From NCBI GenBank assembly GCA_001179505.1, contig CDMY01000295.1, positions 124,001 to 188,000 on the forward strand: DNA of 64,000 nt, in the 5' to 3' direction. This DNA comes from Vitrella brassicaformis CCMP3155 (lineage: Eukaryota; Protista; Chromerida). The notes under the pieces are model-generated. The model did not search any database. It saw nothing but the letters and a program-made list of their open reading frames with translations, and was not told where the DNA came from. Every line of letters starts with the position of its first letter. The stretch's first letter is position 1. Shown here piece after piece: positions 33,607 to 57,100 of the stretch. The position numbers and the translations under genes were made by a program.

Positions 33607-34315
33607 GTATGGGCAAGCGTAGCGGTTCTCCGCTGCCACGTGATGGGCAGAAAAGGCCCAGGAGAGAGGGGGAAGAAGAGAGAGAGGGAGAGGGAGACGG
33701 AGAGGGAGACAGATAAGGTGACTGAAGGAGGTGAATGGCTGTGCATCGAAAATGTGATGGGAGCAGTCTGTGTGGGTCGATGGATGGATGGATGGATGGG
33801 GACATACACACACAATTCAATGGAAATGATCGGCCTGCGGTGCGGTGGTTGGCTGGGCTTACATACACACATACACAGATGGATGTCTTCCTCACACGGA
33901 CTGATCACGACACTGCTCATGTGTGTGTGAGTCGGTGGGATGAAGTCTTCTTTTCTGTCTGTGCACTGGAAATAGAGGCGCCCGACACACACACACACAC
34001 ACACACACGAATTCGACCGACAGACAGGCAGAGCACAGCAGCCTGTCTGTTCGTCATATCCGCGTGTGTGTCATGTATGTCTGTGTGTGCCTATGAACTG
34101 CCTCCCTTTCTCTACTCAACCAACCAACCAACCCATTGATCCACTTCGGCTGACTGACACTAATGCAGGCACCACGCCATGCGATGGATACACAGACCCA
34201 GAGAGAGGATAGATAGCTACACACTACGCACACACACCCATCCATCCATCCACCAGACGCCCCTCTCCCCACCCACACCCACACCCACACCACCCACACA
34301 CACACCAACACCATG

Positions 34316-37300
34316 TCATGGTGCGTATGGCGGCGGATCAGGGAGTCTTGGATGGGCAGGTGCTGGGGGTGGTGGGGGCGGGGGCGGCGGTGGGGCTGGT
34401 GGGGGGATGTCATTGTGCGGCAGCCCCGCCGTCGACGAAGACGCCAGGTGCACCAATTCGCGGTAGTCAAGCGCCTGTGTCCACCATGCGACACGGCACA
34501 CAAACACGTACATGATCACACGTGTGTTGGTGTGTGTGTGTGTGGGGGGGAGTCGATCGCACTTGAGGGTCAGCGAGGTTGAGGAATGGGTTGACGGGGT
34601 CTAGTATGAGTGGCTGCTGCCGCATGAGGGGCCACCAGATGTCGCTGTCGCTGTAGTGAGACGTCCAGATGATACGCAGGGAGGCGAAACGACTCATCAG
34701 ACACAGCAGAGTGCTCAAGGCCTGCATCCACCCACCCACCCACCCACACAAGCCACGCCACGCCGATGCCGCCATGCGATGCGGTCAGTGTGTGGTGTGT
34801 GGTGTATGGATTAGCTACCGTCTGTTGGTCCTTGAGTTGCTTTGCCTGCTGGTGCACGTAGATGGCCAGCAGCTCAAGCAGGTAGTCGCTCGGGCGGCTG
34901 TACACATTGCTCCAAACCTGCCATTCTCAGCCCCCAGTCAGCACACAACACACACGACATCCATCCATCCATCCATGCATCCATCGTGACATCCGACCCA
35001 CCTGTTGGTTCCTCCAATGCTTGATCAGCCGTATGGTCACGCGCACAGGCGCCGGCTGGCGGGACACATACTCACACTGACATACAGACACGCACACACA
35101 CACAGACAGAGATGAACGAACGAACGCATGACGACGTGTGTCACGGTCTTGCTTACTCTGTAAGGCGTCACAGCCGCGTCGAGGTACTCCCTGACGCGGG
35201 GCGGCGACTCGCCCAGGCACTGCATGAGCTCGCCGTAGGTCTCAAACACGGGGGCGGCCTTCAGCGACACCGACAACATGCCCTTGTACTGACAACCAGG
35301 CACACACAACATGGCGGCGTGGCTGCTTTGTGTGTATGTGTGTGTGCGTGTTGGTGGGGGGTGGGTGGATTGCCTACGGTGAAGGTGACGGCGTTTGGGA
35401 GTATATAGAGGTCAGTGACGTGTTCGGGTGGCAGCAGCATCGTCACCATGCGACCCAACACGCGACACAGCGGGGGGTACCTGTACTCACACACACAGCA
35501 AGAGACTTGCAAGGTGGCGGTGTTATGCGATGGCCGACGGACTGACCGACCATGTGTCGAAGTTCTTGGTGGGCAGCCCCTCGGTGTTCAGGATGATGTC
35601 ACACTCCACAGGCTGCCCGCTCACCGCAGTGCCCTGCGCCCATGCAGCCAGACAGACAGACAGACAGATGGTATGTGGCTCTTTCCTGAGTGCGTGAATG
35701 TGGTCCCTCCCTCCCTCAGTGACATGGCTGACATACGTTGTTAGCCGCCCCGCCTTTGCTGATGCTCTCCAAATTCAAACACGAATCGGACTCAAACACC
35801 TGCATCGCATCCCCCAAAAGCCGCACACATGAATACCATGCCATCTGGCTTCCCACACGCGTACCTCCACGAGGGCCTTGACGTCCTGCGCCACCCTCGA
35901 GTTGAACGCCCGCGATGATATCTTAAGATGCAGCTCGCTGTACACCCCCTCAGCCACCTTGACCTCACCCACCCGCCGCACACGGGACGCACCAGCCACT
36001 GGCACAGCAACCGGCTGCTGCTGTGGCTGCTGCACCGGTCGCCACCACGTGACCGTGACGTCACGTGGATACTGCTGGTGCTGGTGCTGGTGTGTGGGTG
36101 TGGATGTGGGTGTCGTCGATGTGTGGGTGTGGGGTCGGTGGGGCTGTTGGTCGAGAGAGGGGAACGGTGCTGGTTGGTCGGGGACGCCTTGTGTGTGTGT
36201 TGGCGTGGGGACGGCGAAGTCGTCGGCCTGTGACAGTGAGGGCTTCTGGGTATGCGGATGCGGCAGGACACTGATCGACGAGCTGGAGCTGGCCTCCGAC
36301 AACGCTGCAACAAGAAGAAAGGAAGGCAAACAAACACCGAACATAGTCCTCCTGTGGCTGCATGCCTGTCCCGTGCAATCCACTACCTGGTGCCTGTCCG
36401 TCTCCATCACGTTGCTCCCCATCGGCCGCCATGGTCCTGACGGTCTCCTCCGCCCCGCCCGGCTGACCCGCACTCTGACACATCAACGCCTCATCCACCT
36501 CGCAATCGAAACACGAAGATCCATCCGTCGACCGCGAGTGACTCGACGGCGTGGGGTGGCTGGATGGGGGTGCGGCGTCTGCTCTTGAGGTGGTGGTCAT
36601 GTGTGGCGATGGAAGTGACGGGGCTGTGGGAGTGGCCGACACTGTCGTCTGTGTCGGTGTGTGGGTGCGTGTGGAGGGCTCTGCAGGGGCGGGAGGTTCT
36701 TCGCTGACATCACATAGGTCGGCGTATTTCTTGAGCGCCACGCGGCCGTTCCTGTCCAGCACGAAGGTGTCGGCGGTCCGCGACAAGAACACGTCAGGCC
36801 TGCCACACATCCACAGATATCAATATGGGTGCTCTCTCTCTCTCTCTCTCTGTGGAGGTGGGTGTGTGGGTTGGTAGCTGACCTTCCTCCGATGAGCGTC
36901 GACACGGCAACGTGGTGCTCCTCGATGAATCGGCCGCACAGCGCCGTGAGGTCCATCCGATAGACACACTGGTCCTTAGCCATCTCGGCCAGGTACCGCT
37001 CCAGCTCCTTGCGCACAATCCGCTCCTCCTCGGGTGTCAGCTGGCACGACACATCACCATCCTCACCACCGCCACCATTGACATCCGACTCTGACTCACT
37101 CGCCAACCACACCTGCACACACACATACAAGAAGGATGTCACACCACAACCACGCACATGCACTGCATACCGTGTTGTTGACGAGCCTCAGCTCGTCCCG
37201 CGATCTGATGAACTCCCCAAACCCATACTCGCTCCCCACCAGCCGCAGCGCCTCCTCGACGGTCGAGCCATACCGATAGCAAAACAGCAACGACAGCTCG

Positions 37301-37790
37301 TCCATCTGCAGGCCGTCGCCGACACACGAAGTCGCCCGCTGATGGTGGTGCAAAAGGTCGCGGAGCATGTGCGCGACGGTCGTGTCGGTGGCCGTGACGA
37401 CCATCTCCATGTGTGTGCCATCGGTGAGCTTGGCCGTGTCGGGGAGGGGCTGGGGATGAGGGTGGTCGGGCGATGAGGGGAGGGGGCACATGTCATACTG
37501 GTCGATGGGGAAGGGGTAGCGGAAGAGAAACAGCACACGCTCCTTCAGCGCATACACCTGAATGAAGCCAGACAGACAGACAGACAGACAAGCAGGCGAG
37601 CAACACACTCTGTGGGTGGGGTGGTCTGATTATTTTTCTGTTTGGGTGGATGAATGAATGCATCAGGCATCATTGGAGTGTGGTGCCCACTGACCGTTTC
37701 TGTGGAGCCGATGCGCACCTCCTGGTCCCTCACCACCGGCTTTGCACCCACACCCGGCCGCACACTCACAAACACGGTGATGAGGCTCAT
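34316..37790 (-). CDS. 2'-5' oligoadenylate synthetase (OAS)-fold protein: UBL - 2x LOTUS/wHTH-like - low complexity - OAS NTase - OAS1_C - poly-Pro; 13 exons, 812 aa
   Basis: Exons 37790-37695, 37557-37171, 37112-36883, 36799-36387, 36304-35865, 35799-35737, 35633-35551, 35480-35378, 35288-35157, 35076-35002, 34917-34819, 34721-34563, 34474-34316. All are GT-AG, phase-consistent and stop-free (2439 nt). Motifs [66 protein letters not shown]. Confidence 0.88.
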
Positions 37791-38192
37791 CCCACCCACC
37801 CGCTCCGCCGAATCCGCCCGCCCGCCGCTTCTTAATGCCTATGCTGTGTCACCGTCGTCACTTGTCATGGGGGATAAGCCGTCCGTGGTTGGCGAGAGGG
37901 AAGCCGAAACGGTAAGTGAGATACGATGGTCTGGAAGGAGAGAGAGGACCAGAGGTGGTAAGGTAAGAGGGAGTGAGATGCGACAGACACACACGGGCCC
38001 ACGCAAGAAGCCGATGCACGCGAAATGAGCGATGAAACGGATGCACCCGATCGCCGGTGGTGTTTTCGGCGGGTGTAGGGAGTTGACGGCTGATCTGGCT
38101 ACGAGAGGGGCGCCTGGGTCTGTTGCTGTCGATTGCAAGCACCATCACTCATCCCTTCTCTCACCGCAGCCTCTCTTCCCGCTGCCTCAGCC

Positions 38193-55780: not shown

Positions 55781-56048
55781 CATCCACACACACACACACA
55801 CACAGTGATACCAAGACACGTCCCTCGCCCACTCGCTGACCATTTGGTGGTGGTGGCGGTGGCTATGGTGCATGACTTGCCGCCGGCCGTGGCGCTCACC
55901 ACCTCCCATCGATCCAGCTGGTGTTTTTGATGTGCGCAGATCTCGAGTGCCGACATCAGGTACTGTAGGCACCCACATACACATACACATACACCCACAT
56001 CCACACGCACCCCAAGGGCGCTGTGTGTCTGGTCATGTGCAGACTCAC

Positions 56049-57100
56049 TCTGTAAGGTGTGAAGGCCGTATGGATGTACTCCCTCACGCGTGGCGGCGAC
56101 TCGCCCAGGCACGCTGGCCATCCCCATGCCGTGACGGAGACAAAAAAGCCGAAGCCGATACGTCGTCCTTGGCAGCCGCCCAGCCGATGCGCAAAAGCAG
56201 CGACTGCAGCCACGGCCTCGCGCTCGATTGCAGCATCATACTTGGTGAGGTCGTTGAATGTGATGAAGAGGGAGAAGATGTCCTGCTGGCGAAGCCCTTC
56301 TCGGCTGCAGCCCCGGCTGGGCCCTACTCGGCCGCCCTGAGTAATGTCTCGGTCGAATATAAAATGTAGGCAGGGATATTGCCTACAAAGATATCACACA
56401 AGCCCCAGATATCACGCTGTCTGATGGCTGCATCATAGTCATCTCTCGTGCTTACGTTGCCGGAGGCGGGAAAAACAGGTCGACGTCTCGCGAATGCTGC
56501 GTTGCCATGGTGCTGTGTGCTGCCCTCTTTCTGCTTTCTATCTCTTCTGACTGCTCTTTTTCTGTCTTTTTTCTCTGAGGCAGCCGACGTTGATGGTGAC
56601 GAGAGGGCTCCCATTTTCCCAGCTCCTCACTGTCCCATCTGGTGACACACCGCACAGACACACACACACACACACACGCGGAGAGAGAGAGAGAGAGAGA
56701 GAGAGACATGGAGGGTTCCCTGGTGATCACGATGGGGTCATATTCAACTATCTCCCAACTCACCGCAGTGCCCTGCACCCATGCAGCCAGCCAGCCAGAC
56801 AGGCAAATGGTATGTGGCTCGTTCCTGTGTGCGTGTGGTCCATTCCCTCCCTTACTGGCGTGGGGACGGTGACGTCGTCGGCCTGTGACGGTGAGGGCTT
56901 CTGGATATGCGGCTGCGGCAGGACACTGATCGACGAGCTGGAGCTGGCCTCCGACAACGTTGCGACAAGGAGGAAGGCAAACAAACACCGAACATAGCCC
57001 TCCTGTGGCTGCACGCCTCTCCCGTGCAATCCATTACCTGGTGCCTGCCTGTTCTTGTGGCGGGAGAAGCGCCGCCACGTCATCATTGCCTCAGCCATGC
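56049..57100 (-). pseudogene. Deleted/degenerate second copy of the OAS-like gene
   Basis: 56856-57070 matches 36203-36420; 56760-56853 matches 35620-35715 (GTAVS exon and upstream intron); 56049-56113 (CLGESPPRVREYIHTAFTPYR plus donor) matches exon 9. Confidence 0.85.

Follow-up and report, generated by a model that had tools for sequence, protein, structure and literature searches.

Proteins belonging to the family of 2'-5'-oligoadenylate synthetases (OAS) are now thought to date to early eukaryotes, and we know of nothing that has been established about their function outside animals. Here we examine a gene of this family from the chromerid Vitrella brassicaformis CCMP3155—it lies on the minus strand of a 64,000-nucleotide stretch of contig CDMY01000295.1 (the window, in whose numbering all positions are given), where an earlier note, made from the letters of the DNA, had proposed an intact OAS-fold gene in an alveolate-like protist. 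The host is indeed an alveolate, and the gene, with its ATG at 37790 and its stop at 34316, encodes in 13 exons and 812 codons a homologue of animal OAS that is joined to a ubiquitin-like domain and two LOTUS-like winged helices; the residues that align with the catalytic positions of the human enzyme indicate that it is most likely not intact as a 2'-5'-oligoadenylate synthetase. On balance, and with moderate confidence, we favour a reading by analogy in which the protein would be a non-catalytic nucleotide- and/or RNA-binding adaptor, comparable to human OASL and evolved independently of it.

OAS-like homologues have been reported from eight of twelve eukaryotic supergroups, nested in the bacterial clade C, and presence of the family in the last eukaryotic common ancestor has been proposed (Culbertson & Levin 2023, PMC10732462). 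The family described here is the one to which the alveolate OAS-superfamily members of that study belong. Among the alignments, trees and hmmscan tables of its supplement are a Vitrella paralogue (EukProt P012849), sequences from Chromeraceae and many from dinoflagellates, with the same motifs, and some hmmscan rows pair ubiquitin with OAS1_C in Alexandrium. The gene studied here (EukProt P006357) was not found in the supplementary files examined, and the main text makes no mention of ubiquitin fusions or of the active site; the word "catalytic" is used there only for the cGAS Pfam seed domain. No paper on the myzozoan family was found in the literature on oligoadenylate with dinoflagellates, Symbiodiniaceae or OST-HTH, nor was one on a LOTUS-OAS fusion in the literature searched on that pairing. 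The UniProt entry for the protein (A0A0G4ERP7) is already named "2'-5'-oligoadenylate synthetase 1 domain-containing protein", and novelty of occurrence is not supported: both the gene and the presence of the OAS superfamily in alveolates are known. What is new is a residue-level and architectural picture of a myzozoan family of ubiquitin-like, LOTUS and OAS-like proteins, and the value of the analysis lies in that reading, not in gene discovery.

The best described relatives are the animal proteins. All polymerases of the OAS class use three carboxylates, and in OAS1 the residue S63 serves in binding the donor triphosphate; human OASL is a dsRNA (double-stranded RNA)-binding adaptor and not an enzyme, inactive in part because its third carboxylate is replaced by Thr (Ibsen et al. 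2015, PMC4446440). With OAS1, OAS2 and OAS3 (PDB 4rwn, 4ig8, 9h1z) the Vitrella protein shares the bilobal fold, the position of the P-loop, the dyad on strand beta2, the equivalent of K213 and the PxxYxLELL and ILDPxxP motifs; it differs from them in being only 17-21% identical, in belonging to a separate clade, in its shorter N-lobe, in its lost catalytic and RNA-contact residues (third Asp to Lys, P-loop Ser/Lys to Ala/Asn, R195/K199 not kept), and in adding the N-terminal ubiquitin-like and two LOTUS-like domains. With human OASL (PDB 4xq7) it has in common an OAS fold in which the third carboxylate is replaced—by Thr in OASL, by Lys in Vitrella—together with a ubiquitin-like domain; however, the Vitrella protein has one such domain at its N-terminus where OASL has two at its C-terminus, and it also carries two LOTUS modules. 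The two proteins are not orthologous, as the protist clade excludes the five sampled animal OAS domains (OASL is not in the tree), and the likeness would be due to convergence. Behind the OAS proteins, the closest solved structure is the bacterial CdnC (PDB 6p80; Z 20.9), which has a complete catalytic site and HORMA/Trip13 partners and lacks ubiquitin-like or LOTUS domains. As for the LOTUS/OST-HTH proteins (Tejas, TDRD5/7, Oskar and MARF1, with the Egalitarian winged helix), Vitrella residues 186-262 superpose on the LOTUS domains of Tejas and TDRD5.

The OAS-like domain makes up the C-terminal ~320 residues and is a true homologue of animal OAS, comprising an N-lobe and an OAS1_C C-lobe, since Pfam, sequence search of the PDB, structure and profile-profile alignment all agree. 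The full protein matches Pfam OAS1_C (PF10421) at 60.7 bits, against a gathering cut-off of 19.9 (E 1.9e-16), and no other family rises above its cut-off; the runner-up is Nrap_D5 at E 0.14, and the same scan gave no DZF, poly(A) polymerase or NTP_transf_2 match. In scans of single exons OAS1_C was found in exons 9 and 11 only, at co-linear places on the profile, and none of the exons of the N-lobe or the N-terminal region gave a match, these pieces being too short. Exon 11 alone scores 24.8 bits, again above the cut-off of 19.9, and its matches in the PDB are solely OASL, OAS2, OAS3 and OAS1. For the whole protein, phmmer against the PDB returns OAS2 (1.9e-18), OAS1 (2.4e-10) and both OASL and OAS3 (2.3e-9), with no other significant match; CdnC, a clade-C CD-NTase, comes next at E 0.77 and is the sole non-OAS entry. 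The HMMER alignment to human OAS1 (4ig8) and OAS2 covers the dyad and the PSDYLLELL, LRIIWT and ILDPVNP motifs, and reproduces the motif pairings with human OAS1 that the earlier note had given. Between the protist family profile and the animal OAS domains hhalign gives 99.9%, with E 5e-36.

Structure leads to the same proteins. For residues 465-790, an AlphaFold2 model based on an alignment of 45 family sequences reaches a mean predicted local distance difference test score (pLDDT) of 91.3 and a predicted template modelling score of 0.86. In Foldseek, ranks 1-9 are all OAS1 (porcine and human), OASL, OAS3 or OAS2, with OAS1 at the top (template modelling, or TM, score 0.70) and OASL second; CdnC, the DZF domains of NF45/NF90, poly(A) polymerases and Utp22/Nrap follow. 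VIA-align, which is independent of Foldseek, places OAS1 first at Z 26.1 (298 residues, 3.0 Å), then OAS2 at 24.9 and CdnC at 20.9, with all others at or below 18.9 (DZF, poly(A) polymerase and Nrap at 17-19). That CdnC is the nearest structure outside OAS fits the published placement of OAS in clade C.

At the active site, the first two carboxylates are kept: E553 and D555 fall on OAS1 D75 and D77 in both MAFFT and hhalign, in the form E-x-D, where most relatives have D-x-E and animals D-x-D. In the C-lobe, K668 (RLIKHW) and D748 (ILDPVNP) align in HMMER, MAFFT and hhalign with OAS1 K213 and D300, which we take to be nucleotide contacts; the K668 position, PSDYLLELL and ILDPVNP are nearly invariant across the family. 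The P-loop reads KGGAANNGT in Vitrella, compared with a family consensus of KGGSVGKGT and KGGSSGKGT in OAS1, so that A540 stands at OAS1 S63 and N543 at OAS1 K66. The third carboxylate is gone as well—OAS1 D148, which sits in strand beta5 three residues before a conserved Pro, corresponds to Lys615 in Vitrella, and MAFFT and hhalign agree on this. Of the OAS1 residues that line the dsRNA groove, R195, K199 and K66 are replaced by Cys, Ser and Asn; neighbouring Arg residues are present near these contact positions, and RNA binding by the OAS-like domain is possible.

A published alignment of related sequences (supplement of PMC10732462) has the catalytic Asp two residues earlier, which gives an alternative register for beta5. 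The two registers were therefore compared across 58 distinct members of the family. None of them has an acid in the D148 column, where Arg and Lys prevail; in the alternative column 11 of the 58 have one, and Vitrella has Ser613. Both dyad residues are present in 39 relatives and one is lost in the other 19, and acids in the alternative column are not enriched where the dyad is intact (5/39 compared with 6/19). An acid five positions before the beta5 Pro was therefore rejected as the third ligand, given its presence in only 11/58, its failure to co-occur with the dyad and the Ser in Vitrella. Another candidate, D594 in HVTDLYILP, was rejected because the model puts that segment in beta3 and both alignments put D148 on K615 in beta5. 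With K615 in place of the third carboxylate, and A540 and N543 where the P-loop should have Ser and Lys, the protein most likely does not polymerise 2'-5' oligoadenylates; an intact enzyme or sensor, as suggested by the earlier note, is not supported in view of these substitutions and of the change of the dsRNA contacts R195/K199 to Cys/Ser. As the third carboxylate is lacking throughout the family, "protist OAS" cannot simply be taken as 2'-5'-oligoadenylate (2-5A) signalling.

From N- to C-terminus, the protein begins with a ubiquitin-like domain; a pair of LOTUS-like winged helices, a disordered low-complexity linker of ~220 residues, the OAS-like domain and a poly-Pro tail follow. The AlphaFold2 model of residues 1-275 has a pLDDT of 88.9. 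Residues 1-88 form a ubiquitin-like beta-grasp, on which ubiquitin folds superpose at Z about 10 and a TM score by target of 0.6-0.74 (Foldseek, VIA-align); the Pfam ubiquitin family is detected in 22 of 24 relatives. It is not detected in the Vitrella copy, in which the domain carries a 20-residue Pro-rich insertion. Two helical modules of ~70 residues each follow. When module 2 (residues 186-262) is superposed on solved LOTUS domains, that of Tejas gives Z 9.4 and that of TDRD5 Z 8.9, at about 1.9 Å over ~70 residues, which is nearly their full length; this match was seen with VIA-align, and Foldseek with the N-terminal model returned ubiquitin folds only. At the sequence level, Pfam WH_Egal is found in 4/24 relatives and not in Vitrella, and the Vitrella protein has no Pfam OST-HTH match. 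Its nearest neighbours in a protein atlas are OST-HTH and Egalitarian winged-helix clusters, which are weak leads (score ≤0.82).

The gene is real, transcribed and spliced as modelled. An exon model was built independently from open frames and GT..AG sites on the minus strand; its first form had 12 exons and a 731-codon frame with its sole stop at the end, and the protein that it encodes agrees at every position with residues 82-812 of a catalogued protein. This protein, P0078 (812 aa; CEM00520.1, UniRef A0A0G4ERP7, EukProt EP00390_P006357), was reached through exon 11, whose 53 aa were searched exhaustively against 1.84 billion representative proteins: 77 proteins were found at E ≤ 0.001, one of them a 100% match whose 90%-identity cluster includes P0078. 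The P0078 transcript is assembled as a complete open reading frame in MMETSP, and a further MMETSP transcript, P0001 (106 aa), spans exons 11-12 at 100% identity. The first 81 residues of P0078 are supplied by one more exon upstream (37790-37695) and by exon 1, which extends in frame at its 5' end to 37557; the start codon is thus 37790-37788, with an in-frame stop 16 codons upstream. A start codon at 37410 had been considered and was rejected, as an RNA contig continues upstream of it and P0078 adds one exon and the in-frame extension. All twelve introns are GT-AG and 58-137 nt long, and the only stop is the terminal one; in the nine exons of the OAS-like part, the acceptors are all CAG and the donors all GT. 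The exons, in the order of transcription, are as follows.

37695..37790, minus strand: exon 0, start codon and residues 1-32, ubiquitin-like strands 1-2; donor GTCAGT; maps to the first 32 residues of P0078.
37171..37557, minus strand: exon 1, residues 33-161, the remaining ubiquitin-like domain (with the Pro-rich insertion) and the first LOTUS-like winged helix; RNA piece 37169-37555.
36883..37112, minus strand: exon 2, residues 162-238, half of LOTUS module 2 (the first), preceded by an acidic linker; RNA piece 36882-37110.
36387..36799, minus strand: exon 3, residues 238-376, where LOTUS module 2 ends, and the low-complexity Pro/Thr/Ser linker; RNA piece 36387-36798.
35865..36304, minus strand: exon 4, residues 376-522, linker and then the OAS N-terminal helices (model helices 495-527); RNA piece 35863-36304.
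35737..35799, minus strand: exon 5, residues 523-543, strand beta1 plus KGGAANN, the P-loop in degenerate form; 63 nt, within the 146-nt gap of the RNA contig.
35551..35633, minus strand: exon 6, residues 544-571, strand beta2, which bears both residues of the metal dyad, E553 (35606-35604) and D555 (35600-35598), as aligned by HMMER to 4ig8, MAFFT and hhalign.
35378..35480, minus strand: exon 7, residues 571-605, a helix and N-lobe strands beta3-beta4; begins with the last base of a split Trp codon; RNA piece 35378-35478.
35157..35288, minus strand: exon 8, residues 606-649, strand beta5 with K615 (35261-35259) at OAS1 D148 and S613 in the alternative register, and the start of the C-lobe; RNA piece 35157-35288.
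35002..35076, minus strand: exon 9, residues 650-674, the C-lobe helix RLIKHW (K668 at OAS1 K213); alone matches OAS1_C profile positions 34-56.
34819..34917, minus strand: exon 10, residues 675-707, the PSDYLLELL helix, aligned by HMMER to OAS1 and OAS2; motif nearly invariant in the family.
34563..34721, minus strand: exon 11, residues 708-760, LRIIWT and ILDPVNP of OAS1_C; RNA piece 34562-34716.
34316..34474, minus strand: exon 12, residues 761-812, the last OAS helix, the poly-Pro tail and the TGA stop; from the exon model.

The evidence from RNA consists of Logan contigs from the public runs X1 and X2, which were placed on 34000-37900. The spliced contigs (2308 nt from X1 and 896 nt from X2) have 0 mismatches and cover exons 1-4, 7, 8 and 11 at the model boundaries; the X1 contig falls on exons 11, 8, 7, 4, 3, 2 and 1 in the pieces listed above, and its unplaced stretches of 146 nt and 179 nt equal exons 5+6 and exons 9+10, respectively. 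With pieces that end at the model boundaries and gaps of these lengths, the junctions are spliced as predicted. Genomic contigs of runs X3 and X5 run uninterrupted through the introns, and X1 RNA depth is 8.2 over exon 0 compared with 1.7 in the next intron bin. The gene model put forward in the earlier note thus fared well: the five peptides that it quoted are all encoded on the minus strand within 34572-35760, the independent exon model and P0078 bear out an OAS domain spread over nine exons in a gene of 13, and the RNA contigs bear out its junctions. Its range of 34430-35960 covers the OAS domain and falls short of the coding sequence, which extends from 37790 to 34316.

Introns and flanks are full of short simple repeats, CA/GT-rich or of the (CCAT)n/(CAGA)n type (34250-34290, 34520-34545, 35640-35670 and throughout the introns). 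These repeats draw very high contig depth and false joints, for example from 34252 to 35645-35649, which are repeat artefacts and not splicing.

Relatives of 400-600 aa align to P0078 both in the OAS part (E to 1e-75) and along residues ~20-330. Those with a name belong to Alexandrium catenella, other dinoflagellates (MMETSP transcripts), Chromera velia (two proteins) and Digyalum oweni, and many relatives come from marine metatranscriptomes and have been annotated by JGI as OAS/OASL. In a maximum-likelihood tree of OAS domains, which included five from animals and not OASL, the protist family is one clade (100/100), separated by a long branch from the OAS domains of animals; the grouping of the Vitrella protein with the Chromera pair is weak (90/41), and the Vitrella terminal branch of 1.07 is about twice the family median of 0.56. 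As judged from these sequences, the family is found in Myzozoa—dinoflagellates, chromerids and gregarine-like apicomplexans—and is a separate clade. Some chromerid and gregarine-like relatives have much longer N-terminal regions, namely Chromera velia P0071 and P0048 (1083 and 1069 aa) and P0066, P0076 and P0060 (Digyalum and others, 715-805 aa). P0066 has two WH_Egal matches and no ubiquitin match, and the two Chromera proteins have no Pfam match upstream of OAS1_C; the N-terminal architecture thus varies within the family.

LOTUS domains are known for binding RNA or a DEAD-box helicase, and the adaptor that we favour can be pictured accordingly in terms of its parts. The OAS-like domain, which keeps its fold, its dyad and the C-lobe contacts K668 and D748, would act as a nucleotide- or RNA-binding module; the LOTUS modules would engage RNA or a DEAD-box helicase, and the ubiquitin-like domain might recruit a partner. 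We infer the loss of catalysis, the RNA binding and the adaptor role from fold, architecture and substitutions, and a role in nucleic-acid sensing is possible. Several points weigh against this reading. The dyad, K668, PSDY and LDPxNP are strongly kept, and most relatives have the textbook P-loop KGGSVGKGT, a degree of conservation that is easier to explain by retained nucleotide binding and perhaps some chemistry; the Arg or Lys found at the third position in most members could have a role in a non-canonical mechanism, and another acidic side chain may lie spatially near E553/D555. Additionally, the analogy with OASL is architectural and not phylogenetic, the LOTUS assignment of module 1 comes from weak matches only, and, as the earlier note had supposed, no biochemical characterisation of any alveolate member was found in the literature searched.

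These points lead to the most serious rival, an active nucleotidyltransferase (NTase) and nucleic-acid sensor with a rewired site. Such an enzyme would make 2'-5' oligoadenylates or another signal with E553/D555 and a non-canonical third ligand, by one-metal or Lys/Arg-assisted chemistry, upon recognition of RNA by the LOTUS modules. The dyad present in Vitrella and in 39/58 relatives, the family-wide conservation of the P-loop, the K213 equivalent and the C-lobe motifs, a fold nearest to dsRNA-bound, pre-reactive OAS1 structures, and a next-nearest structure, CdnC, that is an active bacterial signalling enzyme would all be accounted for; however, the third carboxylate is missing in both registers (K615, S613), and every polymerase of the class carries three, the loss of the third contributing to the inactivity of OASL (PMC4446440). 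The Vitrella P-loop is also without the equivalents of Ser63 and Lys66, the dsRNA contacts R195/K199 have become Cys/Ser, and the 19/58 relatives that lack one dyad residue count against catalysis across the family, so we hold an active enzyme to be somewhat unlikely. A copy in decay—transcribed and spliced, under relaxed constraint and on its way to a pseudogene with no specific function—would fit the doubled terminal branch (1.07 against 0.56), a P-loop among the most degenerate in the family, a ubiquitin-like domain that Pfam misses here and finds in 22/24 relatives, the 25 non-synonymous as opposed to 11 synonymous differences in divergent genomic contigs, the broken partial copy 20 kb away and the existence of the paralogue P012849. 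Against decay stand a frame of 812 codons that is open over 13 exons with only canonical splice sites, a correctly spliced transcript with a complete open reading frame in MMETSP, intact core motifs in the C-lobe and four domains that AlphaFold2 all folds with high confidence, and we consider it less likely still. Membership of another NTase-fold family (DZF of NF45-NF90, poly(A) polymerase or terminal uridylyltransferase, CCA-adding enzyme, Nrap) is essentially refuted: the fold is common to these families, which rank lower among the structural matches, Nrap_D5 reaches E 0.14 and one relative has a sub-threshold DZF_N match, but OAS1_C at 60.7 bits is the sole Pfam family above cut-off, the significant PDB sequence matches are OAS only, the top structures are OAS1, OAS2, OASL and OAS3 with OAS1/OAS2 5-8 Z units higher, and hhalign ties the family to animal OAS at 99.9%. 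The OAS fold named in the earlier note therefore stands.

The OAS family thus has, in Myzozoa, a coherent and expressed branch with an architecture of its own (ubiquitin-like, LOTUS and OAS-like) that lacks the third carboxylate throughout. If the adaptor reading is true, the OASL solution would have arisen a second time, independently; if the family is active, the CD-NTase/OAS fold would have a catalytic variant that is new—either outcome would shape how the ancestry of nucleotide-based immunity is read. A broader and unlikely proposal is that the proteins with a ubiquitin-like domain, two LOTUS modules and an OAS-like domain in dinoflagellates, chromerids and gregarine-like apicomplexans might form an undescribed RNA-surveillance module; in it they would serve either as an independent OASL-like adaptor or as an NTase that uses Arg/Lys in place of the third carboxylate and makes a new nucleotide signal when the LOTUS modules recognise RNA.

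Two observations concern other copies of the gene. Over 35200-37450, short genomic contigs of runs X3 and X5 are up to about 8% divergent, and it is these that carry the 25 non-synonymous and 11 synonymous differences, K615N among them; none of the differences is present in the RNA contigs of X1 and X2. The pattern points to a second copy, haplotype or strain that evolves almost neutrally, rather than to simple alleles. Use of the X3/X5 variants as alleles for a ratio of non-synonymous to synonymous substitution rates was accordingly rejected, the contigs being short, up to about 8% divergent, mostly non-synonymous in their differences and probably from another copy or haplotype.

About 20 kb from the gene and in the same orientation, positions 56044-57047 (minus strand) hold a fragmentary and degenerate second copy of parts of it. 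Exons 5, 7 and 9-12 were not found in this stretch. Intron 3 with the beginning of exon 4 is 92% identical (36201-36396 with 56856-57047), exon 6 together with some of intron 5 is 79% identical, and the 3' portion of exon 8 is 84% identical; from its sequence, this copy looks like a decayed partial duplicate.

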